Assembly (NCBI RefSeq): GCF_964194025.1 | Contig: NC_134473.1 | Location: 71,114,001 to 71,178,000 of the forward strand | Source: Convolutriloba macropyga | Lineage: Eukaryota | Direction of reading: 5' to 3' | Length of the DNA: 64,000 nt | In this document: piece after piece, positions 1 through 64,000 of the stretch | Position numbering within the stretch: position 1 is the first letter of the stretch | Layout: each line of letters begins with the position of its first letter | Position numbers and translations under genes: made by a program | The notes under the pieces: model-generated | Told to the model about the DNA's origin: nothing | Seen by the model: only the letters and a program-made list of their open reading frames with translations | Databases searched by the model: none

Positions 1-3000
1 GGCCAAACCGTTAAGGTAGTCAAACAAACAAGACTAACATTCACAATGGCACATCAACAATTCACAGAATCCTTTTTAGTTTTACCGACGGCAAACTCAA
101 TCATCCTAGGAAACCCTTTCTTCAAAAAACATGACATCACCATTAGCCCAGCACGTAAATTTCTACAATTATCAGACTTGACCATACAAATTAACGAAAT
201 AAAGCCGACAAACGAACCACGAAGAGTAGTTAGACAGAAAAAGATACCAATTTATCTCACGAAAAATACAACGATACAACCAAACCAGCATGCTATTCTA
301 GAATGTTCACCACCTGAAAGCACTGAAGAGTACAAAAACCTCAGTGGAGTACTGATACCGAATGAAATTTTGGAAAGAGAAACAGACTTAGCTTTCACTT
401 CTTCACTTAGCACAATTAGTGACCAGAATAAATTGTTTGTATCAACAATAAACATTACAAATCATCCAATTACCCTACACAAACGTACAGAAGTAGCAAG
501 ATTTTCAATATTGACACCCGAACAAGCAGATCAACTCATCAAAATTGATCCTGAACTTATAGCACTCGCTAAGTTCAGAGAAAAGGAAAACGAAATCCCA
601 GAAATCAATCAACTTATTCAAGACACAGAAAAGAAAGGAAAATTGCAACCGCCGCGACCTCCTCCAGACTACAATTCACTATGGTTCCCGACGCCAGAAA
701 CATGCGATCACCCCGAATTGCTGACACCAATCCAGTTAGAAATTTATAAAAAATTACAAGAACTTAGAAAAATGGAAAACTCAGACCCAATTAATAACAT
801 TGATGACCGACACAATTTCCTTCGCAGATTCCCTTGGAACAAATCAGCCTTAAACCCTGAACAGAAGGAAGAACTCGAAATACTGATACTTGAATATTGT
901 GATATTTTCGCGAAACATCGATTTGACGTCGGTTACAATACAGAACTGAAAATCAAACTGACTCCTGAGCATTCCATGCCAATGTACGTCCAAGGCCCTC
1001 CCACACCAGTACACCTCAGAGAAGAACTACAAGTGGAACTAGCCTTGATGCAGTACTATGGCCTCATCACAACATTGCCTCAATCGAAATACAGTAGCCC
1101 TTTGTTTGCTCACAGAAAGGAATCCGGTAAACTACGACTGCTAATTGATCTCCGGAGAATAAATCACCTTTTAAAAAACGATTATCTTAACTCAAATTTT
1201 CCAATCTCTAACATCACTGATGCAACTAATCACTTTGCCGGAAAGACACTTTTCACAAAACTAGACTGCTCACAAGCATATCACTGTGTCCAAATGGCAG
1301 ATGATTTATCAACACAACTTTTAGCGTTTAACTTTTCATCTCGGACCTATGCATACAAGTGTTTGGCACAAGGCCTCAACAAATCAGTGACCGGATTTAG
1401 TTCTTTCATAAGACATTACCTTGATCCTTGCTTGGCAGCAGACGTTTGTACACAATTCATGGACGATATTGGATGTGCGGTATCAAACTTTCAAGAGCTT
1501 TTACCAACACTAAGAAAAATTTTCGACTGTATTCGCAGATCTGGACTGAAACTAGCACCAGAGAAATGTGAAATAGCCTGCAAGTCAATGAAGTTCCTTG
1601 GAAACATTATAAACTCATCCGGAATTTCACCTGAAGCCGCAAAAATATCAAAATTCCTAAACACAATAAAAATGCCACAGACAACAAAACAAGTCAAAAG
1701 GCTAATCGGCTTTGTACAATTTTTCAAAAACTACATACCAAACCTTGGTGAAAAATTAATACCATTCTACCAACTGCTCAAAAAAGACGCAAAAATACAA
1801 CCCAGTGAAAAACACTATGAAAGACTTGAAATCATTAAAAAAGATTTACTCGAAGCAACCGACATGACATTACGACTCCCCCGACCTGACCTTCAGTACA
1901 TTTTATTATGTGATGCCAGCTACTATGCAGCCGGATTTGTTTTAATGGTAGAAGACTATGTCCAAGGAAAACAATCGAAAGAGAGGAAAACATATGCACC
2001 GGTATCATTTGGAAGCCAAACGTTCACAACAGCGCAACTCAAGTTCTCGATTTATTACAAAGAATTTTTAGCTCTCTATTTTGCATTGGAACATTTTGCT
2101 CATTACATTTGGGGCGCTAGTCAGCCAATTGTAGTACTCACAGACAACAAAAGCCTAACGCAGTTTTTCCAATCAAAGACTATACCACCCTCACTATGGA
2201 ACTTCCTGGACAGAGTCCTATCTTTCAACATAGTGATAGCACATATACCTGGGAGAGCTAACTACGCAGCAGATTTTTTGTCTAGAATTGAAACAGACAG
2301 ATCAGCAAGCCTTACGCTGAAAATGAACGACAAAATCCCAATACGCGAATTTGAAATAGACACGAAAGCAGATACACCAGATGTAACACTGAATGCAATT
2401 GATACAATAGATGAAATCTTCACACCAAAGAACCAACAAACCGAATTTGAGGAGCAACTCAAATTGCATGGGTTATATGAATCTTACTTAGAGCGTCAAG
2501 CAAGCCAACCAGCTGACGAGATAAAGGGATTTGTAAGATTCCATATACATCAAATAAATGCGCTACAATTCACAAACCCAGCAGATACTTTGAACGACAT
2601 ATTACAAAAAACTGACCCATTAGACCTAAAGCACGAACAAATGCAAGATGATGAAGTCCGTAGAGTGATTGAGTGGAAAATGAATGGAAGCCTAGTTGAC
2701 GTAACATACGGAACAAAAGTACTCAAAAAATACTACAAGCAATTAAATCGACTCATAGTGAAAGAAGGAATACTTTACCGTCTCTTTTATAACGATGTTG
2801 GACAAGTACAGTACGAGCAATACTGTTTACCAAAGCATTTGTGGAAGGAAGTACTTTATCGACTTCACAATTCACGTACAGCAGGTCACAATAGAATAAA
2901 CCGAATAATACAGGAATTCCGTCAAAGATTCTATTTCCCAGGCTTCACAGAACAACTACTAGACCTAGTCAAGAACTGTCTCACATGTCTCCAGCTCCGA

Positions 3001-5151
3001 AAAGCCAATGAGAAGCATCTCAGACCGAGTTTACAACCCTTGTCATCACTACAGTCATACCCAGGTGATATGCTACAAATAGATTTAGTGGGAACATTCA
3101 ATTCACCAGTTTACAAATATGTGCTAAGTGGCATAGATGTTTTTTCAAAGTTCTTGTTCGCCGTACCTTTAACAAATGCCAGCGCAGACACTGTAGCTAG
3201 AGAACTAGTGAAAATTTTCTTTAACCATAGTTACATCCCTGAGACCATTCTAAGTGATCTTGGCACAACATTCACATCGTCACTCTTCCATGAGCTTACT
3301 AAACTACTAGAAATAAAATTAAAACATGCAACTCTTAAACACCCGCAAACAATCGGGGTAGTAGAAAGATCACACAACGCTGCTTTGAAACGAATACTGA
3401 AAATCAATACAAGCAGTCAGTGGAATGACTGGCACAAATATGTCTCTCTCGCAGTCTTCATTCATAATACATCATATCACCACTCAATCGGCTGTTGCCC
3501 ATCCTCAATCTTCCACGGACGAGACCCGATCAAACCTTTGGATATACGATTTTCCAGGAAAGCAATGGAATCCGTTGAAACCAACTCTGATTACGTAAAT
3601 GCTTTACAGGACTCCATGATCACTAAATTCGCAGAAAACAAATTACGATTGATAGAATCTTATCAGCGATACAGATATTATTATGACAAAAAAGCGGAAG
3701 CTAAACCACTGCAGTTGCATTCATACTGTCTTCTTCTCAATCCAAAAATAACATCTCAACAACAAACGATCACAAAGACAGTCCAAGTTTGGTTACCACT
3801 TTATAGAGTAGAGAAAGTCTTAACTGACTCGAACTATATTATAAGAAAAACGGGCACACATTTTACCCAGTGTGTACATCGAATTCGAGTCCGCCCTATA
3901 AAACGACCAGACAATTTAGACGATTTAGCCACCATTGACCCAGCAGAGTTCAAAGCCGATCCGTCGCGAAGAGATACCAAAAAAGAGCCAGAACTCTTTG
4001 ACGAATATTTGGAAAACCTTGCATTTAATGATGTTTCCATAAACAACCATCCACCAGAACCACCCTCAGCTAAGAACCCTGTGAAAGTGTCACTATCAAT
4101 TCCAATTGCACCAGCTGCAGCACCTAGAGCCGAGCACCCTGCACCTGAAATCAGGCAACAACCAATAGTAGAACACCCGCCGACTCCAGAAAATGAAACA
4201 CCACCCCAATCACCCCCACCTATAACCAGAACTAATGTACTCGATGACCAAAAGGATAATGCAACCAATGAACCTGATCGCTTAGCACTGGGGTATGAAA
4301 AACGAAAATCGGAAAGACCACAAAACGTTGTTTATGGACCATCACCATTGAAACCTACGAAAATTCCGAAAAAAATCCAGTTCTCAAACCAAGTCGCTAG
4401 ACGGCAATATACAACTACCGACAGGAAAACACCAACTCGGAGAGCAACAACAATAGACGGACAAGCATTAGAAGTCTTGAATACAGACGAAACACCAACG
4501 AGAAGCGAAAAACGAAAAATAATTCAAAAATCTGTACAAAAAGCAAAAAGCTCAGAAGGCACTTCACGGGAAGTTAAATTAGACCAAGTCCGTGCTAGCA
4601 TTTTGAAATATCAAGGGAACGCAGAAACAGAACCCTCCCCTACGTCAGAGAAACGGAAAAAAACAAGAAACAACAAACAAACAACTATCAATTCTTTCAC
4701 ACCAAAAAACTGGCAAAAAATATTTTATGTCAAAGGCAATATTCTACGAATACCTTACCCTATAGCACATTCCATCTCAGCTGATTTCCATATGGGAAAA
4801 GGCTTCGCCAGACGCGTATCACGACAGTACCCGGGAATCAAACAAATAGCCGAGAAAAGTCCACAACTTCCAATCGGAGCGGTAATGTCATATTATGAAC
4901 CACGTGAAGACAAAATTATATTCAACCTTATCACAAAAAAACACTTCTTTGAGAAACCGACATATTACGCATTGTCACAAACACTTCACAACTTAAAGTA
5001 TCTGTTATTAAAACATCAAATCGATACTATAATCTTTCCAAAAATTGGATGTGGACTTGATCAGCTCAAAGAGAAAACAGTCTTCCATTTGATCCGCGAC
5101 ACATTTTCGAACTCAAAAATAACAGTGTATCATCAATTCTCAAAAAGCTGA
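1..5151 (+). CDS. pol: Pol polyprotein, 5'-truncated by the window: protease C-term, dUTPase-like spacer, RT, RNase H, integrase, Pro-rich linker, C-terminal macrodomain
   Basis: Frame is open from base 1. Motifs: protease IILGNPFF; RT SSPLF..RK..GKLRLLIDLR, LDCSQAY, QGL and FMDD (1456-1467); RNase H CDAS..EFLA..TDNKSL; integrase HHCC (H-NSRTAG-H..CLTC) and D..D-35-E (IDLVG / SDLG / VVER). No stops in about 1700 codons. Confidence 0.96.
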   Translation, partial: GQTVKVVKQTRLTFTMAHQQFTESFLVLPTANSIILGNPFFKKHDITISPARKFLQLSDLTIQINEIKPTNEPRRVVRQKKIPIYLTKNTTIQPNQHAILECSPPESTEEYKNLSGVLIPNEILERETDLAFTSSLSTISDQNKLFVSTINITNHPITLHKRTEVARFSILTPEQADQLIKIDPELIALAKFREKENEIPEINQLIQDTEKKGKLQPPRPPPDYNSLWFPTPETCDHPELLTPIQLEIYKKLQELRKMENSDPINNIDDRHNFLRRFPWNKSALNPEQKEELEILILEYCDIFAKHRFDVGYNTELKIKLTPEHSMPMYVQGPPTPVHLREELQVELALMQYYGLITTLPQSKYSSPLFAHRKESGKLRLLIDLRRINHLLKNDYLNSNFPISNITDATNHFAGKTLFTKLDCSQAYHCVQMADDLSTQLLAFNFSSRTYAYKCLAQGLNKSVTGFSSFIRHYLDPCLAADVCTQFMDDIGCAVSNFQELLPTLRKIFDCIRRSGLKLAPEKCEIACKSMKFLGNIINSSGISPEAAKISKFLNTIKMPQTTKQVKRLIGFVQFFKNYIPNLGEKLIPFYQLLKKDAKIQPSEKHYERLEIIKKDLLEATDMTLRLPRPDLQYILLCDASYYAAGFVLMVEDYVQGKQSKERKTYAPVSFGSQTFTTAQLKFSIYYKEFLALYFALEHFAHYIWGASQPIVVLTDNKSLTQFFQSKTIPPSLWNFLDRVLSFNIVIAHIPGRANYAADFLSRIETDRSASLTLKMNDKIPIREFEIDTKADTPDVTLNAIDTIDEIFTPKNQQTEFEEQLKLHGLYESYLERQASQPADEIKGFVRFHIHQINALQFTNPADTLNDILQKTDPLDLKHEQMQDDEVRRVIEWKMNGSLVDVTYGTKVLKKYYKQLNRLIVKEGILYRLFYNDVGQVQYEQYCLPKHLWKEVLYRLHNSRTAGHNRINRIIQEFRQRFYFPGFTEQLLDLVKNCLTCLQLRKANEKHLRPSLQPLSSLQSYPGDMLQIDLVGTFNSPVYKYVLSGIDVFSKFLFAVPLTNASADTVARELVKIFFNHSYIPETILSDLGTTFTSSLFHELTKLLEIKLKHATLKHPQTIGVVERSHNAALKRILKINTSSQWNDWHKYVSLAVFIHNTSYHHSIGCCPSSIFHGRDPIKPLDIRFSRKAMESVETNSDYVNALQDSMITKFAENKLRLIESYQRYRYYYDKKAEAKPLQLHSYCLLLNPKITSQQQTITKTVQVWLPLYRVEKVLTDSNYIIRKTGTHFTQCVHRIRVRPIKRPDNLDDLATIDPAEFKADPSRRDTKKEPELFDEYLENLAFNDVSINNHPPEPPSAKNPVKVSLSIPIAPAAAPRAEHPAPEIRQQPIVEHPPTPENETPPQSPPPITRTNVLDDQKDNATNEPDRLALGYEKRKSERPQNVVYGPSPLKPTKIPKKIQFSNQVARRQYTTTDRKTPTRRATTIDGQALEVLNTDETPTRSEKRKIIQKSVQKAKSSEGTSREVKLDQVRASILKYQGNAETEPSPTSEKRKKTRNNKQTTINSFTPKNWQKIFYVKGNILRIPYPIAHSISADFHMGKGFARRVSRQYPGIKQIAEKSPQLPIGAVMSYYEPREDKIIFNLITKKHFFEKPTYYALSQTLHNLKYLLLKHQIDTIIFPKIGCGLDQLKEKTVFHLIRDTFSNSKITVYHQFSKS
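4720..5136 (+). other. TARG1/OARD1 (Poa1p/DarG-like) macrodomain fused in frame to the Pol C-terminus
   Basis: IFYVKGNI..IAHSISADFHMGKGFA..IFNLITKK..KPTY..L...L..L..FPKIGCGLDQL..ITVY matches, motif for motif, human OARD1 as I recall it (ITYVKGDL..LAHCISEDCRMGAGIA..YYLITKK..KPTY..MPRIGCGLDRL..ITVY). Confidence 0.92.
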
Positions 5152-6385
5152 AGCCTACTTTTCACCTAAAACGCACCTCCATTATAGTAGCTATTGGAGC
5201 AATAACAGAAAGGATGCGAAAGAACGAAATTAAAGAGATAAAGAGAAAAGAATACAAAAAAGAGGAAAACTTGGAAGCCGAACGAACGAAGCAAAAACAC
5301 AAAAAAAGGAAATATCTTGTTGTGAAAAAAAAAATCAGTCGTCGAGCTATGCAAGACAACCTCGCACCTATCCACAAAAGGTCAGGTAACCAACCAAATA
5401 TGACAAATGAAGGAAGACAATCACAAAAAGCAGAAAAAAATGAAAAAACGAGAAAAATGGAAAAATTGGAAAAAACGAAGTAAGAGCGAATTTCAAATTT
5501 TGAGAAAAAATAACTACCGAACCCGTCTTCAGACATTACGTGGAGCTTATATTCCAATATTGATCAAGTTTTGAAGTTTAGTTTTCAAAAAAACTATAAA
5601 TAAAAAATTTGGGCAAAATCAGCAAAAAATGAAAAAGCGCCAAAGTTCAAAAGTCAACCAAACTTTCAAAAAAAGAGCAAACGACCTCAAATTTGGCCCA
5701 GCGACCCCATTATGCCACTAGAAAGGGCCCACCAAAGGGTTTTTACCTGGCACCAATAGGAAACGAGAACTTCTCTTCTGAATTTCCAAAAATCGGACAT
5801 CAAAAATGTGAAAATTGCACGCAAACAAACGGTAGCCCCACAAAATTAGATGCTGAAACGGGCAATTTTTTGCGCTGGTATTAAAGGCAACACGTATACC
5901 AACCCATCGAAGCCCAAACAGAACAGAAAAAATGAAAATTTTTGAAGTTATGGCCCAAAAATCACAGAAAATCGACTTTCGACAGCAACCCACTGCCTAT
6001 CTCCCAAAAATGAGCTAAAATCTCCATTTTTTTGAATTCGGAGACTACGAAACGCTGCACCAGACCCCAAAATGAGCCGACATGACCGGAATTTAGCTGT
6101 AATAGCCCCAGAATCCATTTTTGGCCGAACTGTGCAGACCAAAAGTCGACCGAAATCTGACCCAAAAAATAGCCTGAAAATCGGGGGTTTTTTCAAAAAA
6201 TTGCAAGTTTAAATGCCCAAAATGCCTAATTATATAGTACTCCGATAAAGCTAAGCTCACGGTGGTTCTAATTAAGCAAAAATACCCAGCACTTTAGCCT
6301 TGGTGGACAAGTTAGAGAACAGTATTGGTCATGTTGCACTAATCTGCAGAAACGCCAAAAAATGAAAAGTTCACTTACCATACCT

Positions 6386-6994
6386 TCATGAATTGATTGG
6401 CCCTTTTTGACGTTGCTGATTTCTTCGTACACCTAAGGCGCCTTGTGTCACACCAGCCCAAGCAGTTTTCTTTCTCTCTTCACTGATTAATGTTGATATA
6501 GAAAGAAGACACGTAAACTGATTTTGCACCCCAAAAGTCGAAACTGTATGGTGCCATCCATAAGGAAGATAAAGTGTCTCCCCGGGCGCTTGAACGGCAA
6601 TATATGCTTGGTCCACAAGCTCTGGCAGCTGATCGATAAGTGCTGGAACCTCTCTGGCCAATCTTACGACTTCAGCAGCAAACTTTCCAGGAGGCAACAA
6701 AATCCACAATTTTGAGGCTTGCCCGTGCAAAGTGATAAAAGAATCAGCAGCATCCTCCCAATCGGAATGCCAAGGCACGAACTGGGGTCCCTCGCCCAGG
6801 ATGCAAAATCCAAACGACCACGGAGCCAATTCAAACGTTGGGGGCAGCTTGTAATCTATATCACACTTGTACTCCTCCTTCAAGGTACAGTTAAATAAAA
6901 TGTCTTTGCCGAAGTTTCCGTACCGCGTTTCATCAACGGGCCAATTGAAACGCTTAGTGATGTTCCCAAACTTCTTTATATTCGCTAGGTCGCG
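6386..6994 (-). CDS. JmjC-domain (cupin-like) 2-oxoglutarate/Fe(II) dioxygenase, main exon (202 aa plus stop)
   Basis: WHSD (HxD, 6761-6769), SKLWILLPP and QAPGETLYLPYGWHHTV (distal His 6548-6550) are JmjC signatures. The frame stays open upstream of the tracked start to a TTTCAG acceptor at 6995-7000. Confidence 0.85.
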   Translation of the reverse strand, partial: RDLANIKKFGNITKRFNWPVDETRYGNFGKDILFNCTLKEEYKCDIDYKLPPTFELAPWSFGFCILGEGPQFVPWHSDWEDAADSFITLHGQASKLWILLPPGKFAAEVVRLAREVPALIDQLPELVDQAYIAVQAPGETLYLPYGWHHTVSTFGVQNQFTCLLSISTLISEERKKTAWAGVTQGALGVRRNQQRQKGPINS

Positions 6995-7090
6995 CTGAAA
7001 ATTTCATTAATCATTTAATATACAGTACAAAAGGCAAATTATTCGAGGAAACTCCAACAACTGCAAAACGTACTAAATAAGGAAACTCAC

Positions 7091-7232
7091 GTTTAAATTC
7101 CGATCAGAGAACTTCACAAGCTGTCTTTATGATCGAAGGAACACCAACCTCCACTTCCTTTGGCTGCACTCGCTTTACAGGCCGTAACAAAGCCTCAGCT
7201 TTAGATTTCAGATCATAAAATTCAGAAATCAT
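7091..7232 (-). CDS. Probable first coding exon of the JmjC gene (MISEFYDLKSKAEALLRPVK..GVPSIIKT / VKFSDRNLN)
   Basis: Acceptor TTTCCAG then ATCAAAATG at 7238-7230, GTGAGT donor at 7090-7085, and a 96-nt intron to the main exon. The ATG frame meets TGA at 7106-7104, so a 1-nt frameshift or a 58-nt GT-AG intron (7121-7178) is needed. Confidence 0.5.
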
Positions 7233-7521
7233 TTTGATCTGGAAATGAAATTTTAATTCATGCTAACATGCAATGATAACTAAAGCTACAAACATCTACA
7301 CAAAACGCTTTAAACACACGTGCTAAACTGTTTATTTCACGCACTCTGACAACACACTTAATTGAACTTTGTTGGGTAAAACATTACATGCACATGCACA
7401 CACTGAGTAATTAAATGAGGCATTAAAACAAACAGTTCTAACAATTGGTAAAGCACTCACTAAGTCTCAATGAAACTAACTCTTCCCTTCACTTACTCAT
7501 GCAGACACAAACTACACTGAT

Positions 7522-7746
7522 TTAACCTCTGAATAGGAGCCAACTAACAGCCCCCCTCAGTATGCACAAAACCAAGAGTATGATTAAGGCAACATAAATG
7601 AAGGACATCCAATCGAATTGATCTCCTTCAACTTGAACCCCACATTGTGGCGCATGGCCTCGAGTCCAAATGTTGAACCTTGCAAAATATGTGCCATTGG
7701 GACAGCAAGTAATAACAAACTCGTCAACAGTGACATTGAAACACAT
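7522..7746 (-). CDS. 74-aa single-pass membrane protein (accessory ORF of the retroelement)
   Basis: Real ATG in the context TTTTCAG|ATCAAAATG. N-terminal part has 4 Cys and two N-glycosylation sequons (NVT, NGT), followed by hydrophobic helix FIYVALIILLVLCIL. Confidence 0.6.
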   Translation of the reverse strand: MCFNVTVDEFVITCCPNGTYFARFNIWTRGHAPQCGVQVEGDQFDWMSFIYVALIILLVLCILRGAVSWLLFRG

Positions 7747-7930
7747 TTTGATCTGAAAAGCTCAATGAATATCAAATAAACTGATCCAACAAAATAAAGA
7801 GATTATGAAAGTTAAACAATTAACTAAATCATTCAAACACACAAACTGAACAAATAACCAGGGACAAATCAATTTTGACGTTTTGGAAGTACGCAGCTGC
7901 AAAATAATCATTGGGACACAAATCCAATCT

Positions 7931-7952
7931 AAATTTCAGTTACACAAAAATG
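7931..7952 (+). promoter_or_regulatory. Splice acceptor and start context for a subgenomic env mRNA
   Basis: AAATTTCAG (AG at 7938-7939), 10 nt before the ATG at 7950, as expected for spliced env expression. Confidence 0.55.
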
Positions 7953-10226
7953 AGATTAATTCTTTACCTTTTGACTTTATGCGAAGTATGCCTAATTCAG
8001 TCAACAAAATCAACTGACTACTTGTCTAAAGGAATTTTGTTCAATGAGAAAAGCAAAATCCTTTTGGCTGAAAAGTTTGTTAACATCGAATTCCTCGTTC
8101 CATTCCCAGAATACAATTTTACTACTAGAGCTTCAATCCAGGAAATGTTGACAAAACTAGCCGAAATGTGGAAACTTCCGTCAGTTTTCTGCCCCCTAGA
8201 TTTTTCCAGTCATTTCAATTCAACCACCGAACCCTTTAACTTGAACTGGATGCTACAGAAAACTATAAGCGAAACAACTGAAGCCCAACGAGAAGTTGAT
8301 TCTATGCGAGAAGAAACCGCTACCTTTCTAACGATGGGAGAAGAAAACGAACGGAAAAGAAGAGGAGCACATGTTGGAGCCGCATTAATGGCTGGCATAG
8401 GACTATTTGGTGGAGGAATTCTCATGGGAAACTCAGGGAGCTGTGGTTTTGCCGGAATTTTTGGTAACTGTCAGGACCAAGGTAGAAAAAATGCGGAAAA
8501 CATTGCCCAATTGAACGAGTACGCATCTGTGTTGACAGACCATGTACTAGAAGTTGAAAGCGAGGCGAACGAAAAATTTTTTCTCATTTCGAATGAACTT
8601 GAGGAAATCCAGAAGATACAAAATGAAATTATGAAAAACCAAAACGAAAATTGGAAAATCATAGAAGATCAATTTGAAGTCATCGAAAAAAACTTTCATT
8701 TGCTGAGAGATTGTACACAGATGTTATTCTCCAACCAGCAACTGAATATCAATTTTGACACTGTAGCGTCTCTCTTGTCCATCCTCTATGCAGACATAAA
8801 GAGCTACAGATCAGCTCTGTATGCGTACAAAGTCAACCTACTAAACTCAATTCCAATTTTATTGAGTAAACGTCTACCTATGTCTCTAGTCCCAAAGTCA
8901 TCGTTAATGGCTATACTCAACTCAGTTTACGATAGTCAAAAAGATGCCACCGATCGCCTTACATTGGCAATACCGATGCAAGATCTTTTATCGTACTACG
9001 ATGCAGAATTATTAAGTGAAGTTTCAACTATCACAGAAGGACTGTTGTTAACATTATCTATCCCTCTCTCCTCAAGCCAGACAGCATTCAACGTATACCA
9101 GGCTCATCTCATACCCATGCCACAACTAGATTCTTCAGAAGCCTTAAGATGGGTTACTGAAGGCCCTTACTTGGCTATATCTGAAGATTCGATGGAAACT
9201 ACGGTATTAACTGAACAACAATATTCAAACTGCCTCGGATCATCAAGATACCAAATATGCCACGAAACTATAGAAACCCACCTGGGACAATCGTCTTGTT
9301 TAGCCACTCTTTACTTCCATAGCTCAATTACTGCTCTCACAGTTTGCGACACAGAAAAGATAACACTTCCTACACCAGAAAAGGCTACTAATCTTGGATA
9401 CGGCATCTGGCTCATTACGTCCGCTTCGAAGACATTCACACTTCGAGAATATAGCATCAGAAGTGACAATTTGCCACGAAGTACTGAGCACCCAGGATGT
9501 AACGTATGTATTGTCACATTGGAATGCGGCACTCAACTAATTAGTAAATACATCAAAATCAGACCAGACCTTCAAAGTTGCGAAAATATCCCAGCGAAAA
9601 GAATAGCAGTCAAACTACCAGATCCTTTACAACATCTCATCTCAGCCATCCCTGACATCTCAGAATTGCCCTACTTTGAATCCAAAGTCGATGCAAACGT
9701 TGCTATGTTGAAAACCGTGAAGAAACAGTTAACAAAAAGCTCACAATTCATTGAATTAGAACAACTTGATGCAATTGCAAAACCAATTGCTCACAAAATG
9801 AAACTACTAAAACCTACATTAACAAATAAGCTTGAAACCTACGTCCCAATTAAGCTTTCACTAACTTTGACCTTAATTGTCTTTATCGGAAATCTCATCC
9901 TCCATGTTCTAGCCATGTATCTATACCATCGATTCGCAATTTTCAAACGTCTAGTACCGAACTTTTTGACTCATGATAAATCGAAAGTACCACTGAAACC
10001 GGTTGTCACTATAGCGAGTGAACACAAGGAAGCAGTGCGAAAGAGTGCCCACAAGTGGAAAGATGCATTAACAGTACTCACAGCCCAAGAACTTGGCACA
10101 CTTGCACGATCACGGTCTTTGACAAACAGTCAACAACTTAACACTTCGAGAAATTCCCTCGCGACAATTGCACGAGAAGACAACCCAATGGACGACACCA
10201 TTGAATTGGCAGAAACATCTACTTAA
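7950..10226 (+). CDS. env: Envelope glycoprotein, class I F-type fusion protein (758 aa)
   Basis: Signal peptide MRLILYLLTLCEVCLIQS; furin site RKRR (8352-8363) directly followed by Gly/Ala-rich fusion peptide GAHVGAALMAGIGLFGGGILMG; heptad/coiled-coil region; Cys-rich ectodomain; TM LSLTLTLIVFIGNLILHVLAMYLY; cytoplasmic tail. Confidence 0.9.
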   Translation: MRLILYLLTLCEVCLIQSTKSTDYLSKGILFNEKSKILLAEKFVNIEFLVPFPEYNFTTRASIQEMLTKLAEMWKLPSVFCPLDFSSHFNSTTEPFNLNWMLQKTISETTEAQREVDSMREETATFLTMGEENERKRRGAHVGAALMAGIGLFGGGILMGNSGSCGFAGIFGNCQDQGRKNAENIAQLNEYASVLTDHVLEVESEANEKFFLISNELEEIQKIQNEIMKNQNENWKIIEDQFEVIEKNFHLLRDCTQMLFSNQQLNINFDTVASLLSILYADIKSYRSALYAYKVNLLNSIPILLSKRLPMSLVPKSSLMAILNSVYDSQKDATDRLTLAIPMQDLLSYYDAELLSEVSTITEGLLLTLSIPLSSSQTAFNVYQAHLIPMPQLDSSEALRWVTEGPYLAISEDSMETTVLTEQQYSNCLGSSRYQICHETIETHLGQSSCLATLYFHSSITALTVCDTEKITLPTPEKATNLGYGIWLITSASKTFTLREYSIRSDNLPRSTEHPGCNVCIVTLECGTQLISKYIKIRPDLQSCENIPAKRIAVKLPDPLQHLISAIPDISELPYFESKVDANVAMLKTVKKQLTKSSQFIELEQLDAIAKPIAHKMKLLKPTLTNKLETYVPIKLSLTLTLIVFIGNLILHVLAMYLYHRFAIFKRLVPNFLTHDKSKVPLKPVVTIASEHKEAVRKSAHKWKDALTVLTAQELGTLARSRSLTNSQQLNTSRNSLATIAREDNPMDDTIELAETST

Positions 10227-10461
10227 CTGTCTAACCTTAACATGTGATAAACTTTAACATATGACTTCTTCACAGCCCTTTCATAAACAATCCCGATATT
10301 ACCTTAAGATCAAATGTGCTCTGATACCTAATTGCTCTCATTATTGCTTTACCTTTTAACCCCCTTTCAATTGGGCGGCTTTTCACTCCCTTTAAACTTC
10401 GTCTCATTTATCTGGAAATAATTCTTCAAAATTTTCATTGAAAATTTTCAAAAAGCAGCGT

Positions 10462-10810
10462 TGTGTGACATCCTAAATATTTTCATATTTAATTCCTAAA
10501 TATTTTCATATTTAATTAGATGTCAATCTATCATTTAACCTCTAAAGTAATAGACTCGAATTGACTTAATAGCCTTGATTTTCTCGTTCATATTATGCCC
10601 TTTACTATGCGAGTGCTTTCGAACAATGTTATTGAATTAGTCTAAATAAACCAATGTAAACTAAATGAACAGATTGCATTGATGTTATTAATCTTAACAT
10701 TATTTATAATGACCTTACATTCTTAATAAAATGAACCTCTAATCATTGAAAGTAGAGAATAGAATTCATACCCCAGAAGATGTGATCTAAAGTAAAGTTA
10801 CTTTAATTCA
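10462..10810 (+). repeat. Putative 3' LTR (end not determinable without the 5' LTR)
   Basis: Starts TGTGTGACA after the purine-rich AAAAAGCAGCG. AT-rich, with AATAAA at about 10585 and 10724 and an internal 23-bp tandem duplication. Confidence 0.45.
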
Positions 10811-10989
10811 TGTTCAAAATATAGCAGTTTTCAAACTAAGGCTGTCAGTTCCCACCGTTCGAAGACCTTAGACCGCTCTTCAGGAAAATTGAAAACCAAA
10901 ACATAAATTTGATAGAAGTTTATTTTGAATTTGATTTAAAATAACATAACAGATATACAGAAACTAAGTATATTACAACTACATTAAAA

Positions 10990-11480: not shown

Positions 11481-13076
11481 AAATGCCGGTCTTCTGGTAG
11501 TTTCCATGCTCTAAGCTAAGCATGGCTTTGTTACAATACGCCTAGTTATTCTTTTTTGTCGTCTGACACTCTTCTTTTGATCGTCTTTCGTAAATGACTT
11601 ACCTCTTCAAATGTCTTTGACTCGCTTTTGGTCACTTATGGCTGCCCTAAACTTTTCGAAGTTAATTGAAGTACTGCTATGTGATGAAACCTATAAATGA
11701 AATTTAATAAAAAACTAGCATGAGAAACCAGAATAAAATGAGCTATCAGAAATGAGCGGAACGCTAGCCTTTAAAATGTTTTACTTTATACATGGATATT
11801 ACCTGGTGCCTTACTTTTTCAGCAGTCATTTTCAATAGCCTTTTGTTATTCTGGAAATTCTCTCGCTAACCTTGCGAGAAATTTACGATTGGTTCCCGTA
11901 ACTAGAAAAAGATAGTTTTGTTAGTTGATCAATTGCTCTCCAACCGATTTTGTGGTAATTATATTGGTCACGTGGTCTTTTTTAAGCGGTTTTTCGCCTG
12001 GCAAATTTTCCCGACGTTAGGAGGTTATGTTTATCTTCTATTTGGAAATTGACATTGTACCATGTTCTGTGATTGGCTTTTCGGAAACGGATCTTTTCTG
12101 TTTGTACCATACAGCTTAATGGATGTTTTTTTACAAAATGATTTACTATGTAGTTGCACGTGCTCTGTTACTGGGGGTGATTAACGTACTTGGGGGCACA
12201 AACGGAAAAGATCCTCGGAAACAATAATTTATTGGACTGTTGAGCATAACTTCTCATGATTTTTTGTATGTGATAATCTTTTCATTTATTCGCCACTTGT
12301 TTATTTAGTCAAATTGGGGCTCAGAGAGGGATTTGCTTATTTTGTTTCTTTTAAAGCCGCAAATTTGTGAATTGAGAAATTTTTTCATAGAGCAAAATTC
12401 TCTGTTTTGAAAGTTCTAGTCACATGGTTAAAAATAGTCTCATTTTTTTAAAATATGGTTTTCCCAATTCACTCATAGTCCGTTCTAGGTCTAGTTTTTT
12501 GTTTAGTCAATGAAAATTCTTTAAATTGTACGTGAGGACTTGTCCTGCTATGTTTTTTAATTCGCTTTACCTTTTGATCACGTTTTTCGTTTTTACATAA
12601 GTCACGACTTTCACGTTTGACTTCTGACTTACCTCACCCACTGTTTCAACTGAATGGTTTTTAAATCCATTCACTCAATGAATTACGCAAGATAGTGAAT
12701 ACAGTCAAGGTGAGAATATCAAAATCAAAAGAGAGGGGATAAAGCCCGGTCATTAAGTCAATGAGAATTAGGTTATCAAAGTTCATTAGTGTTTGCTAGC
12801 TGACATTGGTATTAAGCTTATTAGCTTTCAGTTTCGAAGCTGAATTAAGTATAGTTTTAGAATGGAAACGAAACTTGCACGTCAAATTAGAACACTTCTT
12901 AACACTGAAAACAAACAGAAAAAATTTCGGTCAATTTATCTCTTCTTTTTTTCTTATGTTTCAATCCCGATGTGCATCAAGCGCGTCAATGACGACTATT
13001 TTCCGGCAATCCGCCGGCTATGTTGGTAAATTTCGTGTTGTTTTTTTCGTGTTGTTTTCCAATTGCTCTTATTTAG

Positions 13077-13333
13077 ATGAACCTACACGGTCACTGTCTG
13101 GTCTTATTCTCAAGAACAATGTCAAAAACCACCTGAACACTTTCCCTGCAGAAGTAACAAAGTTTATCAAACAAGAATGCCTGAAATGCGTGGGCGATCG
13201 TTCCCCTCTCATTCGTGCTACAATTGGAATACTCATCACTACAATTGCGACCAAAGGAAACATCCTCTCCTGGCCCGAACTTGTCCCTACACTAATGACG
13301 TGTCTGGATTCCGACAGTATAGAAACAGTAGAG
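13077..13333 (+). CDS. TNPO1: Transportin-1 (karyopherin beta2), first exon visible in the window
   Basis: [33 protein letters not shown]; bounded by TTTAG| and |GTAGGA. Confidence 0.95.
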
Positions 13334-13817
13334 GTAGGAGGCTGTTCTTTTAGTGCTGATTGAGGACTTGAATGATAAAGAAAAAATGATTAAATTGATA
13401 ATCGACAGGTATCGACTTTGTATGCGATCTTTCGACGGATTGCAATGGTGTAGCCCATATCAGGAGCTCATAAAATAACAGTTTTACTTAAGCTTACAAA
13501 TATATTTTATATTTATTCTGTGGAACACATTAAAAAACATTTTTTCTCCTCTGTCGTCTAGGAGATACTGTTGAAATTTATGTGAGTTGTGTAGTACTTT
13601 ATTAAGACTGGAATATATGCCAGTGTGTTGCTGGAGATTAATTCCCCCAACGTTTGTGCGTTATCTTTTGTATTTTTCAGTAAATCTTGTCCGTTTCGTT
13701 TCATTCTTTAGTTGCGCAAAAGCCAACAGTAGTTTAACTGTCCGATGTGAGCTGCTTGATTGGAATTTTTGCCTACTTTTGTTGTACGTGGTCATTAAAA
13801 TTAACTGTCTGTTTCAG

Positions 13818-14156
13818 GGTGCGTTTGGAGCCTTACAGAAAATTTGCGAAGACTCATATGAAGTTTTTGAAATTGAACCCGCTTCTCAATACCTCAGTGT
13901 CATGATCCCCAAATTTATTCTCTTTCTTAAGCACCCCCAGGCCAAAGTGAGGTCACATTCTCTGGCATGTGTGAACCAGTTTATCTTTGGTCGATATTCC
14001 CCGCTTGGAGATCACATGGATCTTTTTATTGATGCTCTATTTTCGCTGTCCTCAGACAATGACCCCGAGGTCCGGAAGAACGTCTGCAGGGCACTGGTAA
14101 TGCTTCTTGAAGTGCGACTGGAACAACTTTTGCCTCACATGACTCAGATTATTGGT
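13818..14156 (+). CDS. TNPO1: Transportin-1 exon
   Basis: [31 protein letters not shown]; TTTCAG| and |GTAAGA; phases consistent. Confidence 0.95.
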
Positions 14157-14629
14157 GTAAGAACCTCGCTTTATAAAATTTTCTACATATGTCATTAAAG
14201 CAGCATCTATTACAACAATTTAAATTCATTCACTGGAAAGAATTGCGGGCTTTTAGTTATTTTTACATAAGATAACTCGCGGAACCCAAACGTTAAAAAA
14301 TGAATTTACCTCTTGAAAAATTGCTTTCAATGACTAAAACTGCAGTACACTGTTACAAATGTGTAAGTTATGTGACTGTGATCAAGTCACTGTGAAGATC
14401 TGACATTCGTTGAGAACCGCATAGCGGTTCGAGGTTTCGAGAATTTGTCTTTTGAGCCCAGTCAGGTAACATAGCTTGAAACATGCATTTTACACCTTTA
14501 AATTGCTGAAAGCCATTGGCATTTTGTATCGAAAATCTGACATTGCTGAATTTGGCATTTGAATCTGTGCACTTGAGTGTTGCAATGACAGATATAAAAT
14601 TGTAGATGAAAATTGTATGTTTGTTTTAG

Positions 14630-14748
14630 TATATTTTGGAGAGATCTTTGGACAAAGATGAAGCGGTGGCTTTGGAAGCGTGCGAGTTCTGGCTTACTTT
14701 TGCAGAGCAAGACATCTGCCGCGAAATACTCAGAGAGTTCCTACCAAA
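14630..14748 (+). CDS. TNPO1: Transportin-1 exon (not in ORF track)
   Basis: [27 protein letters not shown]; TTTTAG| and |GTAAGC. Confidence 0.95.
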
Positions 14749-14932
14749 GTAAGCCAAGCGTATTGTCAATAGTATCTTATCACAAATTTTAACAAGTGTT
14801 CCCAAAAGGGGTACTGACTAAAATTGACCGTATTTTATTGCCTTGCCTTGCAATTAGAAATTTGTTGAATTTCGAATTCGTGCATGGAAATCAGCGATTT
14901 AAGTTTGAATGGTGATTGTTTGTTTGTTTTAG

Positions 14933-15583
14933 ACTTATTCCGGTGCTTGTGCAATGTATGCGTTACTCTGAAATTGACGTGATCCTTCTGAAAGGAGATC
15001 TGGAAGAGGACCAGCACATACCAGATCTTGAGAAAGACATCAAACCCCGCTTTCACTACTCTAAGACCTCTGGATCTGCCGGTAGACTCTCAAGCAACGG
15101 TTCTGCAGACTTAGCTTCAGATGATGAAGATATCGGAAGTCCGGGATTTGGACCTGGAGGTCCAGATCTGGATGATGAAGACACATTATCGAATTGGAAC
15201 CTAAGAAAGTGTTCAGCTGCGGGCCTGGACGTTTTATCAAATGTATTCCACGAAGATATCCTGGATACGTTATTACCCATTCTGAAATCTAAATTGCAGT
15301 CTACAGAATGGGAAGAAATAGAAGTTGCTATTCTAGCTTTAGGCGCTATAGCTGAAGGATGTATGAAGGGAATGATTCCTCACTTGCCCGATCTGATTCC
15401 GTTTTTAATTCAGGCGTTGAACTCGAAAAAGGCGTTAGTGAGAAGCATTACATGTTGGACTTTGTCTCGGTACACACAATGGGTGATGCAACAGCCTCAT
15501 GACATATGCTTGCAGCCTTTAATGTCAGCTTTGTTGAGAAAGATTCTTGATGCTAATAAACGGGTGCAGAAAGCAGCTTGCAG
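14933..15583 (+). CDS. TNPO1: Transportin-1 exon including the acidic H8 loop
   Basis: [47 protein letters not shown]; AG/GT boundaries in phase. Confidence 0.96.
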
Positions 15584-15656
15584 GTTAGTGGAACGAAAAA
15601 AACCTGATCTTTTCAAATATCAGCTCAGTGAAATATGTAGAAAGAAAGTGTTTATT

Positions 15657-16045
15657 AATTGCTCTTGAACGCAGTTCATAGCAATTATAGTAAACGTGTG
15701 TGTCTTTTTTTAATGCAAATTTTTCGCTTGACAGTTTTGCGCTTTTCTTCTAGAACATTCTTTGACTTCTCAAGTGACTTTTTCACGCTTTCGTTCTTCA
15801 TTTTTGAGTAATCTCTATTGCTCTGAAGTAAAGCTAATATAAATTCGGTTGCAGAATAAGTGAGGTATGTGCTCTGTAGCGCAGTGGTTAGTAGTTGTGG
15901 CTGTGGATCGGGAGGCCAGTGGTTCGAATCCCGGCGGAGGAAATATTTTTTTGCACCCATAATTTGATCTAGGCTACAGCCCCTGAATTAAATTGCCTCG
16001 CCTGTCGTTCAAGAGCAATTCTTCCGACATTTGTCGGTTTATGTT
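15657..16045 (+). mobile_element. Non-autonomous Helentron/DINE-1-like element, family B (AATTGCTCT subterminal inverted repeats)
   Basis: 5' AATTGCTCTTGAACG, 3' CGTTCAAGAGCAATT, then hairpin CCGACATTTGTCGG and a T-run. Related copies at about 26104-26440, 28446-28670, 31311-31505, 37816-38168 and 40146-40555. Confidence 0.7.
15871..15943 (+). pseudogene. tRNA-derived (His-like) SINE-head remnant inside a family B element
   Basis: A box TAGCGCAGTGG, B box GGTTCGAATCC and a CTGTGGA loop. Anticodon and acceptor stems pair poorly. Confidence 0.6.
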
Positions 16046-16059
16046 TTCAAATTGCTGTA

Positions 16060-19000
16060 GAGAAGAGAGTGGTTTTTTGTTCATGTCGCGTTTTTGAGAG
16101 AGGGAGAGAGAAATAGATAAGGGAGCATTTTTTTTATCACGTGCGGTTTTTTAAACTCTAGCACTTTCAGTTACAGGTGTTTGTATTGTTTACCTCACAA
16201 CACTTATAGTGGATTTAAAAGCGTATCTAATCATTTGAAGCAAAATAAACTTTGTTTTATTAATAGCCGCACAGCGATAGCTGGGGCTATTATTGGCCTT
16301 CTCTTGGTTTTTTACAACTCGAAGAGGAGTATTGGAGAAGTCCTTTTTTTAATCAATTTTTTTGGAGTGATTTTTGAAGCGGGAAATGAAACGCGTGAAA
16401 AAATTTGGAGTGATTTTGGTGCTGAGCAAAAGTGAAGAGCGGAGCGAAAAGAGAGTGGTTTTTTGTTCATACCGCTGTTTTTGAGAGAGCGAGAATTTGA
16501 TGTGTGAAAAAATTTTCTCTAAGCGAGCGATTTTTTTTTTCACGTGCGGCTTTTAAACGCAGTTTTTTGCAACTTTTGATGGTTGTTAGGTTTGGTTTTG
16601 ATATTGTATTAGCTTTAGGCTTGTTTTGATAGGAATTGAAGGTTTCAAGTAGCTAATTTGAGTTTAATGCTAATTTGGAGGTATTTGATCAGTTTTGCTG
16701 ATTTGTAGACGAAATTTAATGATTTTTTGCCTGTTTTTTTGTTTTAATGCTTTAAGTGGGATTTGAATAGAAGCTTGTTCAGATAGATACCAATTGGTTA
16801 AAGTTTTCTTGGTATAAATCAGTTTTTCTTGGGAAAATTGACAGAAAAATTGAGAAATTTTAAACCATTTTTCTTATTTTTTTGCAGTTTTTCTTTTTTA
16901 TCTTTTTTTATCTTTTTTTTTAATCTTAGACAAGTTTCATAGCCTATAATGACTTGCCCGTTGTTTTGCGAGTTTTCAATGCTCTAAATGCAAAGGAACT
17001 TTAGTCGGCTTTACGTTTCCTTGTACTATTAAAAAAGTCATTTTTTTTCAATTAGTTTTTGGTTTTTGAATGCCGTTTCCTGAAATTTTTTATGGTTCTT
17101 GTTTAGGTTCAGGGTTCACAATAGTTTTTCTAGTTTTTTAGTCATATCATAGGTATGGGCAATTTTCTCCTTCGAGGCGTTTCCGGAATTCTTCCGGGTA
17201 TATTTTCTTATTTCGTCGTGTCGATTTTTGTTACGACCTTATGACGTCACAACCACTTCAAATCTGCTTTTTGTTCATTCGTTCATGCAATTTCAACTAG
17301 AGTTGCGTGTGCGACGTCATTTTTTGCTCTTAGTGGAGCGAGTTTTTTTTTCATTCGCGTGATTAAAATTTTGGTCACACTTGACTTACCTCACTCTCAA
17401 AAATGACTTCCTCACTTTGAAATTGACTTTTATTTACTTTAATTCAAAGAGATGGGTGTGTGCCACTCTAAATGAAGGTTATTTCAGAGCAGCTAATAGA
17501 GGCAGCAAAAACTTACACAGAATTTAAATCAAGAGTATAACATATCAGCTTTCAATGAAAAGACGAATTTTTCTGGTCTCCTTTTTACTGTTTTTTTTGA
17601 GACTGCAGATCTAGGAAGCTATTGCGGCTATTTTCTGGCAATCTGTCAGCAATGTTCTAATTTTGAGCTATTTTGACCTTTTTGCCACGTTGGACCCTTT
17701 TTAGGAGTTTGTATTCATCTTCAAATTTTATAGCATTTGGGGATGTTCTGTGGTTCGAACTAGCTGTTTTGGTTGCCTTTCGATATAATTGATGTTTTGA
17801 GTTTGATAGGATTAATTTTGAGTTGTTTAAAGATAATTAAGTAATTATGAGCAAATTTCGACCGATGTTCGTCTGGTAAGTTTTGTTAGTGCTTCTGATT
17901 TAAAGCTTCTCGCTGTAGTTTTTCTTGTTCAATCTTTAATTTAGAGCAATTTTTTATTCTTAAAGATGCCATTGAAGGCTAGACAGGGCATTTTTCACTG
18001 AAATAAATAATACATTTTTCCTTATTTTTTCATGTTTTTTTCTTTTGCTTTTTTTGTTTCTGGAAAGTGTTCTGTGGGTAAATGCTTGAGCAGAAGCAGT
18101 AAGAAAACTGTTTTCGCAAGTCAATGGATGGGAAGTAGCAGTTAAGTTTTTTTGTGGACGATTTTCTTAAGCATTTTGCAGAGAATTTTACAATTTGCTC
18201 TTGAATGAGAAGCAATTATTGTAAACGTATGTGTCTTTTATAATAGCCGCACAGCGATACCTGGGGCTATTTCTGGAATTCTGTCGGTTTTCTATTTCGT
18301 CACGATTTTTGTTATGACCATATGACGTCACAACCACTTCAAATCTGCTTTTGTACCTTCTTTCATGCAATTTCAACTGAACTGCGTGCGTAGCGTCATT
18401 TCTCATTGTTAGTGGAGCGAGTTTTTTTTGTTCGTTTGCGTGATTAACTTTTGGTCACACGTGAATTACCTCATCTCAAATTGACTTTTCTTTACTTTAA
18501 TTCAAAGAGCTAAGTTCAAGTGAGTGTTTTTCACTCTAATTGAAGATCATTTGAGAGCAGCTCATAGAGGCAGCCCTAACCTGTACAGATTCTTAATCAA
18601 AATTTAACATCTCATCCTTTAATGAATAGTAATTTTTTTGGCTGTCTTTTACTGTTTAATAGCCGCACAGCGATTGCTGGGGCTATTATTGGCCGTCTCT
18701 TGGTTTTTTTATTTCGTCAAGATTTTTGTTACAACCATATGACGTCACAACCACTTCAAATCTGCTTTTTGTTCAATCGTTCATGCAATTTCAACTGAAG
18801 TGCGTGCGTGATGTCATTTTTCGCTCTTACTGGAGCGAGTTTTTAAGTTCATTTGCGTGATTAAATTTTTGGTGACACGTGACTTACCTCCCTCTCAATA
18901 ATGACTTTTTGACTTTGAAATTGAATTTTATTTATTTTAATTCAAAGAGATAAGGTCAAGTGAATGTGTGTCACTCTAAATGACGGTTATTTGAGAGCAC

Positions 19001-62875: not shown

Positions 62876-63071
62876 AATTCTGAATGTATGATGAGGCATA
62901 ACATTTTCACAAGCGCTGGTTTTTAATTTCATCTTGAGCTCAATACGTGGACTTGGTCATCGTTCTCGATGATATTTCCTTTCATTCCCAGCTGCTCTGT
63001 TTATCTAAGCAGAATGGAAAGAAATAACAATCATGATACAAATTTCGCATTGTTTCTTTTAAATTTTCAAT

Positions 63072-63953: not shown

Positions 63954-64000
63954 TGTAAAAAGTGACATGATCATAGCTCTGAATCAGTATTGAAATGAGA

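Follow-up and report, generated by a model that had tools for sequence, protein, structure and literature searches.

An env-carrying Ty3/gypsy retroelement of Convolutriloba macropyga with putative accessory enzymes

Results

Overview of the element

The analyzed window, a stretch of 64,000 nucleotides of the Convolutriloba macropyga genome (GCF_964194025.1, NC_134473.1, positions 71,114,001 to 71,178,000), contains most of a young, retrovirus-like Ty3/gypsy element, whose lineage carries a macrodomain of the type that removes ADP-ribose fused to pol, an antisense JmjC oxygenase-like gene with a predicted intron and a gene for a predicted small membrane glycoprotein, a gene set that we found in no paper searched. 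The element is followed about 1.8 kb downstream by the first recognized exon of a transportin-1 gene. The original prediction, made from the sequence alone, described a complex-retrovirus-like Ty3/Gypsy element at positions 1-10810, with an intact pol ending in a TARG1-type macrodomain, two antisense accessory ORFs (JmjC and a 74-aa transmembrane protein), an intact F-type env and an LTR-like end. This observation is confirmed, as every listed feature is present, but three points have to be corrected: the element ends at position 10977, the JmjC ORF is only the second exon of a two-exon gene, and this gene carries a frameshift in this copy, so that not every gene is intact.

The window covers the 3' 11 kb (positions 1-10977) of an LTR element of 13.6 kb. 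The 3' LTR (10464-10977, plus strand, 514 bp) has TG..CA ends, is 100% identical to the 5' LTR lying upstream of the window, and is followed by the 3' copy of the 5-bp target-site duplication ACTAC (10978-10982). Identical LTRs with TG..CA ends and 5-bp duplications (ACTAC, ACGGG and CCTTT) were found in three copies. No part of the element resembles the rest of the window, and a search against Rfam found nothing in the window.

Gag, pol and the macrodomain

The pol ORF (1-5151, plus strand) runs off the window start; its full length is 1780 aa in L003 (related loci are denoted here by L and a number). On the same contig gag (403 aa) lies upstream and overlaps pol by 79 nt, with pol in the -1 frame. 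The order of domains in pol is protease (a weak RVP match), RT (about 1114-1605; Pfam RVT_1, E 7e-22), RNase H (about 1807-2205; RT_RNaseH, E 5e-18), integrase (2830-3333; Integrase_H2C2, E 2e-12, and rve, E 4e-11), a disordered Pro/Lys/Thr-rich linker and a macrodomain. The nucleocapsid zinc knuckle in gag is only weakly matched (zf-CCHC, E 0.018), and a TGG-starting stretch follows the 5' LTR, although searches for tRNA genes found no tRNA matching it as a primer-binding site. The pol architecture, with RT_RNaseH and Integrase_H2C2 domains, is that of Ty3/gypsy and not of Retroviridae; the likeness to complex retroviruses is functional only.

The in-frame C-terminus of pol (4711-5148, plus strand; the last ~160 aa) matches the human TARG1/OARD1 structures 2l8r and 4j5q (E 4e-19) and, more weakly, the DarG macrodomain 5m31 (E 7e-6). 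The TARG1-like pattern TKx(30,35)Px[IL]GxGxD, which holds the catalytic Lys and Asp (PMC6397177), is present in four elements, namely the window copy, L002, L007 and L009. The T-K, the EKP lysine and the GCGxD aspartate are invariant in three lineages, including L007 and L009. The domain is only about 35-40% identical to any cellular OARD1 found, so that no recent donor is evident. A region-limited protein search for pol-macrodomain fusions found only the element's own family; however, it also missed the 44%-identical pol of L007, and thus says little about rarity.

Antisense genes between pol and env

Between pol and env, 2.8 kb carry two genes on the minus strand. The spacer between the pol stop and the 3' end of the antisense JmjC gene (5152-6385) is of low complexity, has no DNA similarity to other lineages, and contains neither AATAAA nor ATTAAA on the minus strand, i.e. 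no canonical poly(A) signal follows the antisense gene. The K/E-rich ORFs of 89 and 131 aa at 5152-5560 were considered and rejected as genes, because they are of low complexity and were not found by TBLASTN in the other lineages tested.

The ORF 6386-6883 (minus strand), originally predicted to encode a JmjC dioxygenase, has no ATG and lies within exon 2 of a two-exon gene spanning 6386-7232 (minus strand). The predicted GT..AG intron of 70-96 nt sits at the same column in three lineages: donors GTGAGT/GTAAGT are in phase 0 in L002, L009 and L012, whereas the acceptor TTTYAG lies at the same alignment column in four lineages. The unspliced homologs of 286-288 aa and a cellular-type JmjC protein align straight across the junction. 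In the window copy the gene is broken by one frameshift in exon 1.

Taken alone, the window exon is only weakly JmjC-like and stays below the curated Pfam thresholds (21.8 against 27.4 and 21.1 against 24), while two relatives, the protein P0132 (23.7 against 22) and the JmjC protein of L017 (25.4 against 24), are above them. The similarity is clear for the family: we identified 34 relatives, all of them short, and their profile matched KDM7, PHF8, PHF2, JMJD6 and KDM2A with E-values of 2e-13 to 9e-8, the KDM7/PHF8 cores being matched at 2e-13. The predicted structure (pLDDT 83, pTM 0.78) is a double-stranded beta-helix with PHF8 and PHF2 as the best folds (PHF8, PHF2, KDM7 and KDM2A at E 6e-6 to 2e-4, TM about 0.5). 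All four residues of the HxD...H metal triad and the 2-oxoglutarate-binding Lys are present in the window's exon 2, and within the family the first His is found in 21/21, the Asp in 19/20, the Lys in 22/25 and the second His in 22/28 sequences. No PHD or other Pfam domain was found in the JmjC-like ORFs scanned (the window exon 2, the exon 1 and exon 2 pieces of L009 and L012, and the unspliced proteins of L016 and L017). As the protein resembles only the catalytic core, we do not assign it to the KDM7/PHF8 subfamily.

The second antisense gene, ORF74 (7522-7746, minus strand), is open in this copy and encodes a small Cys-rich protein with a conserved CCxNG(T/S) N-glycosylation sequon and one predicted C-terminal TM helix. 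Homologs were found in four other lineages.

The env gene

The ORF74 start and the env start are separated by a divergent intergenic region (7747-7949), in which a TTTCAG acceptor-like site lies about 10 nt before the env ATG; its use is an inference. The env gene (7950-10226, plus strand) is open and encodes 758 aa with a signal peptide, a single RKRR site at residues 135-138, a Gly-rich fusion-peptide-like hydrophobic stretch (hydrophobic windows start from residue 140), long helices and a C-terminal TM near residue 640. R135 and R138 are invariant in 38 relatives. By predicted fold (pLDDT 74) it is a class I, F-type fusion protein, similar to the F proteins of Hendra, Nipah, PIV5 and RSV (E 5e-7, probability 1.0) and to baculovirus F/Ld130 (E 1e-18 to 1e-13), although the TM-scores are low (0.2-0.4). 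It had no Pfam hit at E 0.01, and only two of 120 listed relatives carry Baculo_F (PF12259). A search with the env alignment found only two short contigs in JGI metagenomes and nothing in IMG/VR. The untranslated stretch after env (10227-10463, plus strand) contains a short purine-rich tract just before the LTR, and the same sequence is kept in the deletion copy L004.

Conservation of the accessory genes

Next we analyzed whether the interval between pol and env is peculiar to this locus, an outcome that had been named beforehand as refuting the original prediction. The whole cassette recurs in the same order and orientation in at least five diverged lineages from three ENA assemblies (ERZ25071359, ERZ25071366 and ERZ25074608) and ocean metagenomes; it was found in L002, L006-8, L009, L011, L012 and L016/17. 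These include elements whose RT-IN is only 55-65% and whose env is only 43-70% identical. The non-coding spacers have no detectable DNA similarity between lineages, while the coding parts do. A more distant lineage (L015) lacks the cassette. Within the family, a second full-length copy on another contig, with its own target duplication, carries the whole interval at 98.4% identity, whereas the one copy that lacks it (L004) is a deletion derivative and not an ancestral env-less form, as its deletion starts inside the macrodomain coding part and ends inside env.

In the window copy gag, pol, ORF74 and env are open and the JmjC gene has one frameshift; no copy seen has all genes open. Within-family substitutions are too few to give a dN/dS and show no sign of selection on the accessory genes (one synonymous and four non-synonymous changes in JmjC exon 2).

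Discussion

The original interpretation, an infectious retroelement with two enzymes erasing host modifications (PARP signalling and methyl-based silencing), is partly supported. Our analysis establishes a recently inserted env-carrying Ty3/gypsy (Metaviridae-type) element in an animal genome, with the layout LTR, gag, pol with the macrodomain, spacer, two antisense genes (JmjC and, upstream of it on that strand, ORF74), env and LTR, and it establishes that the three accessory modules are integral, conserved parts of a clade of such elements, with pol and env belonging to one element bounded by identical LTRs and a target duplication. Infectivity, the enzymatic activities including ADP-ribosyl hydrolysis, the action of the macrodomain against PARP signalling, the removal of silencing methyl marks by the JmjC protein and the mechanism outlined below are inferred from sequence and family membership alone. 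We consider this explanation as a whole likely, though not certain.

The macrodomain would be made as part of Pol and would thus sit with RT and integrase. Like TARG1 and DarG-type macrodomains, it would remove mono-ADP-ribose from acidic protein residues or from nucleic acid, which would protect the replication complex or its cDNA from host ADP-ribosyltransferases. The JmjC gene would encode an Fe(II)/2-oxoglutarate oxygenase of the KDM7/PHF8/KDM2-like core type without a reader domain; its most likely role is the removal of a repressive lysine methyl mark or the hydroxylation of a host factor, which would favor expression of the element, although the substrate of such a reader-less core cannot be read from sequence. 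The antisense orientation would explain how an intron-bearing gene survives RNA-mediated copying, since the intron is not a splice substrate in the sense genomic RNA. ORF74 would be a small type III or tail-anchored glycoprotein of the secretory pathway, acting with or alongside Env, and Env would be cleaved at RKRR and mediate membrane fusion. The frameshift in the JmjC gene of a copy with identical LTRs indicates that this gene is either dispensable for insertion or was lost at or after it.

It is also possible, though we consider it unlikely, that the accessory genes are real and conserved but serve the element's own replication rather than counter-defence. The macrodomain, situated directly after integrase in Pol, might process ADP-ribosylated Gag/Pol or bind poly(ADP-ribose) at DNA breaks to guide integration, and TARG1-type enzymes act in DNA-damage responses (PMC9967889); the JmjC protein might hydroxylate a translation or splicing factor, as JMJD6 does, and the hydroxylases JMJD6 and FIH are also among the profile and fold matches. 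Nothing distinguishes this possibility from counter-defence at the sequence level, although the best matches are lysine demethylase cores rather than hydroxylases.

It is much less likely that the cassette is decaying cargo, that is, host gene fragments captured once by an ancestor and now carried passively. The frameshift in the JmjC gene of the youngest copy, the interruption of the macrodomain in L012, its calling as an ORF separate from pol in L009, and a within-family pN/pS near one for JmjC exon 2, based on very few changes, could be explained in this way. However, open frames of about 200, 160 and 75 codons persist in lineages sharing only 26-51% amino acid identity, with the catalytic residues, splice sites and a glycosylation sequon kept while the spacers have diverged beyond detection, and young copies with identical LTRs carry the cassette in two different assemblies. 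A nested insertion or an assembly chimera at 5.2-7.9 kb, with pol and env coming from different elements, to which only the lack of the interval in L004 could point, is refuted by the deletion in L004, which also removed the end of the macrodomain and most of env, by the second full-length copy, and by the same layout in other assemblies.

The element shares with other env-carrying Ty3/gypsy elements of metazoans ("errantiviruses" in the wide sense, such as Drosophila gypsy and ZAM; PMC13524379) the LTR-gag-pol-env-LTR layout, the order of pol domains, an F-type (paramyxovirus/baculovirus F-like) env and the presence of multiple near-identical copies in invertebrate genomes. It differs in the extension of pol by a TARG1-type macrodomain and in the two antisense genes, one of them with a predicted intron; the words macro, JmjC, accessory and antisense do not occur in the main text of that paper, and literature searches for a gypsy or LTR element with a macrodomain or a JmjC gene found nothing relevant. 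The macrodomain belongs to the sequence family of human TARG1/OARD1 and bacterial DarG and has the same catalytic Lys and Asp, but here it is the C-terminal domain of a retroelement polyprotein and not a stand-alone cellular enzyme or an antitoxin. Positive-strand RNA viruses (coronavirus nsp3 Mac1, alphavirus nsP3, hepatitis E virus) also embed a macrodomain in a replicase polyprotein, where it is thought to reverse antiviral ADP-ribosylation; those domains are of the MacroD type, the one described here is of the TARG1 type and sits in a reverse-transcribing element, and no such viral macrodomain was among the hits in our searches. With the demethylase cores of KDM7A/PHF8/PHF2 and KDM2A (PDB 3kv9, 3k3o, 3ptr and 4qwn) the JmjC protein shares the predicted beta-helix core, the metal triad and the 2-oxoglutarate lysine, but it has only 250-290 aa, lacks a PHD or other reader domain and is less than 20% identical to them. 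Antisense accessory genes occur in complex retroviruses (HTLV-1 HBZ), and antisense or intron-bearing extra ORFs in plant Ty3/gypsy elements; shared with the present element are an accessory gene on the minus strand of a reverse-transcribing element and an intron, here predicted, that survives because it is antisense to the genomic RNA, while the element class (Metaviridae-type, animal host) and the gene content (a predicted oxygenase and a small glycoprotein) are different here.

A more far-reaching and only tentative reading is that a clade of retrovirus-like Ty3/gypsy elements of marine animals encodes its own kit against host control, consisting of a Pol-borne TARG1-type ADP-ribosylhydrolase, an antisense intron-containing JmjC oxygenase that erases a silencing mark, and a small envelope-associated glycoprotein. 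If so, these would be the first "complex" Metaviridae with enzymatic counter-defence genes.

In summary, env-carrying gypsy elements are now known across animals but are described as plain gag-pol-env, whereas this lineage has kept two putative enzymes and a predicted membrane protein through deep divergence. This suggests that host ADP-ribosylation acts on reverse-transcribing elements in invertebrates, viral macrodomains being otherwise known mainly from RNA viruses. It also offers a candidate element-encoded response to methylation-based silencing at the chromatin level, and the antisense JmjC gene would be a natural case of an intron preserved inside a retroelement by antisense placement.

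Structure of the element and its copies

One ORF runs from the first base of the window to a stop at 5151 on the plus strand and contains reverse transcriptase (RT), RNase H, integrase zinc-finger and integrase core domains, and a second long ORF is located at 7911/7950-10226. Two minus-strand ORFs lie between them, at 6386-6883 and 7522-7746. The window is identical to part of contig ctg37802 of ENA assembly ERZ25071359, which provided the DNA upstream of the window (this locus is denoted L003; L003 coordinates are window coordinates plus 10192). On that contig the element is 13,588 bp long and has 514-bp LTRs that are 100% identical, start with TG and end with CA, and are flanked by the 5-bp duplication ACTAC. 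In window coordinates the 3' LTR is 10464-10977, and hence the element ends 167 bp beyond position 10810, where the original prediction had placed its end. A 403-aa gag lies upstream of the window, and pol overlaps it by 79 nt in the -1 frame; gag has only a weak zinc-knuckle match and pol has a weak match to retroviral proteases.

Three more copies of the same family were found on other contigs of the same assembly. In the window copy (L003), gag, pol, ORF74 (the minus-strand ORF at 7522-7746) and env are open, while the JmjC gene has one frameshift in its first exon. The copy L002 is full-length, 98.4% identical to the window copy over 13 kb, with LTRs that are 99.2% identical and its own duplication ACGGG; it carries the whole pol-env interval, and its gag, both JmjC exons and ORF74 are open, whereas pol has two frameshifting indels and env has one premature stop. 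The 8.6-kb copy L004, with the duplication CCTTT, has one internal deletion that starts within the macrodomain coding part and ends within env, and thus is a deletion derivative and not an env-less ancestor. The copy L005 is older and degraded: its gag has two frameshifts, its pol has two frameshifts and three stops, and it is cut off inside JmjC exon 2. No copy seen has every gene open.

The macrodomain

The last ~160 residues of pol match structures of human TARG1/OARD1 at E 4e-19 and the DarG macrodomain at E 7e-6, while the match to Pfam Macro alone is weak. The published TARG1-like pattern TKx(30,35)Px[IL]GxGxD holds the catalytic Lys84 and Asp125 of TARG1 (PMC6397177; the mechanism is described in PMC9967889). 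This pattern is present in the window, in L002 and in two related elements, L007 (from ocean data) and L009 (from assembly ERZ25071366), and the two residues are invariant in an alignment of three lineages. A profile search yielded about 19 strong short hits on long ENA contigs, which are probably element-borne, and below them a broad plateau of 30-40% identical OARD1-like proteins from animals, protists, bacteria, a giant virus (Hokovirus) and a fish iridovirus (scale drop disease virus), the two viral ones being 33-37% identical. No recent donor is evident. One 251-aa fragment from a 1011-bp JGI metagenome contig (P0226) contains the end of an Integrase_H2C2 domain followed, after a Lys-rich linker, by a TARG1-type macrodomain, which hints that integrase-macrodomain fusions occur in other elements.

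The antisense JmjC gene

Taken alone, the 165-aa ORF at 6386-6883 is only a marginal JmjC match. A full scan of 1.84 billion representative proteins found 34 relatives, all of them 86-371 aa long. Their profile matches the JmjC cores of KDM7A, PHF8 and PHF2 (E 2e-13 to 5e-11) and of JMJD6 and KDM2A (about 1e-7), and a structural model with pLDDT 83 has PHF8 and PHF2 as its best folds. The metal-binding His and Asp, the 2-oxoglutarate Lys and the second His are retained in 21/21, 19/20, 22/25 and 22/28 family members, respectively.

The ORF has no ATG, and the same holds, upstream of the catalytic core, for its homologs in L012 and L010, two related elements of the same assembly. In four lineages the frame opens at the same alignment column, directly after a TTTYAG acceptor. 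In L002, L009 and L012 an ATG-started exon of 48-73 codons ends in phase 0 at GTGAGT or GTAAGT, 70-96 nt upstream. The joined proteins are 250-283 aa long, which is the size of the uninterrupted 286-288-aa homologs in L016 and L017 (elements from assembly ERZ25074608), one of which passes the Pfam JmjC threshold. These homologs and a cellular-type JmjC/Cupin_8 protein (P0162) align straight across the junction, including the conserved P-x-I-[ILV]-[KR] strand encoded by exon 1. We therefore read the gene as consisting of two exons, at 6386-7232 on the minus strand of the window. The Tara-type element has instead a 397-aa antisense ORF in this position, which is a distant relative (hhalign probability 77%, E 2e-5). 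In L011, a degraded element of the same assembly as the window, two copies of the JmjC-like exon (7980-8495 and 9992-10507) lie 2 kb apart, and the two frames have the same length and the same Met positions.

ORF74 and env

Homologs of ORF74 lie upstream of the JmjC gene, on the same strand, in L006-8 (contigs from Tara and Logan ocean data), L009, L011 and L012. They share four cysteines, an invariant CCxNG(T/S) sequon, a Trp and a C-terminal hydrophobic helix, and the L012 form also has a signal-peptide-like N-terminus. No Pfam family matches these proteins.

The env protein has a signal peptide, a single RKRR site followed by a Gly-rich hydrophobic stretch, very long helices, 14 cysteines and a TM near residue 640. 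It has more than 150 relatives, many of them in multi-copy clusters, and two carry Pfam Baculo_F. The structural model (pLDDT 74) matches structures of paramyxo- and pneumovirus F proteins (E 5e-7, probability 1.0), as well as baculovirus F/Ld130 and chuvirus-type glycoproteins (E 1e-20 to 1e-13). Thus the F type assigned to env in the original prediction is supported by the predicted fold, but not by Pfam on this protein.

Conservation of the cassette

Next we asked whether the cassette is part of the lineage. It is: the order and orientation pol-macrodomain, antisense JmjC, antisense ORF74, env recurs in related elements, with the exceptions stated below (identities are at the amino acid level relative to the window). 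In L009, env is 59%, the macrodomain 41%, JmjC 31% and ORF74 31% identical. In L006-8, env is 70%, the macrodomain 44% and ORF74 31% identical, and JmjC is represented by the distant 397-aa form; the contigs L006, L007 and L008 are permutations of one another (env-gag-pol against pol-env-gag), as if assembled across a collapsed LTR or a tandem or circular form. In L012, the RT-integrase region is 65%, env 52%, the macrodomain (interrupted in that copy) 26%, JmjC 30% and ORF74 33% identical. In L011 and L010 the RT-integrase region is degraded, env and JmjC are present, the macrodomain is found only in L011, and ORF74 is found in L011 and as a short partial match in L010. In L016 and L017, whose LTRs are 100% and 99.7% identical, respectively, the RT-integrase region is 55-57%, env 43%, the macrodomain 35-36% and JmjC 26-31% identical, and ORF74 was not detected.

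In contrast, in L015, from the same assembly as the window, the RT-integrase region is 50% and env 36% identical, the macrodomain, JmjC and ORF74 are absent, and env follows pol directly; hence that lineage has no cassette. It has 4.2 kb (12371-16601) between env and its 3' LTR (235-bp LTRs, 100% identical), and this stretch holds a 342-aa antisense ORF with no Pfam match, possibly a different accessory gene at a different site.

The spacers between the genes show no DNA similarity across lineages, whereas the coding parts are still detectable. This contrast, together with the retention of the catalytic residues, the splice sites and the sequon, is the main evidence of constraint, as the within-family substitution counts are too small to be used.

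Genomic surroundings

Exons of a host transportin-1 (karyopherin beta-2) gene, at 12806-21516 on the plus strand, start 1.8 kb downstream of the element in the same orientation; the encoded protein is an orthologue matching human transportin-1 at E 6e-77, with IBN_N and HEAT Pfam hits, which identifies the host as an animal. Several short interspersed repeat families (D4, D9, D10, D14 and D19 of our repeat analysis; 70-270 bp, 5-9 copies each) fill the transportin introns between 12400 and 47700, and none of them occurs inside the element. A degraded non-LTR (LINE-type) element at 33242-36307 on the plus strand comprises an endonuclease/exonuclease/phosphatase domain followed by RT fragments in separate ORFs. 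A tandem array of roughly 1-kb units, about six copies at 62-91% identity (repeat families D2, D3, D5-D7, D12 and D16), is located at 48700-55000, and a satellite with a 33-bp period (family D1) occupies 62936-64000, running to the end of the window.

Relation to described elements and possible functions

Env-carrying Ty3/gypsy elements with F-type or gB-type env have been described across metazoans (PMC13524379). The main text of that paper does not mention macrodomains, JmjC, accessory genes or antisense genes, and further literature searches found no LTR element with either enzyme. We consider the element described here to belong with these env-carrying elements, from which it differs by its macrodomain and antisense genes.

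In summary, our analysis establishes the anatomy of the element, the family membership of its domains, their conservation and the recent insertion of this copy. The functions are inferred from sequence and structural models alone, without expression data. The macrodomain may travel with RT and integrase and reverse host ADP-ribosylation of proteins or nucleic acids, while the JmjC core, which lacks a reader domain, may remove a repressive methyl mark or hydroxylate a host factor. ORF74 would be a small glycoprotein of the secretory pathway, and env may be expressed from a spliced mRNA, since a TTTCAG lies about 10 nt before its ATG. In this view, the antisense placement of the JmjC gene would let its intron survive reverse transcription.
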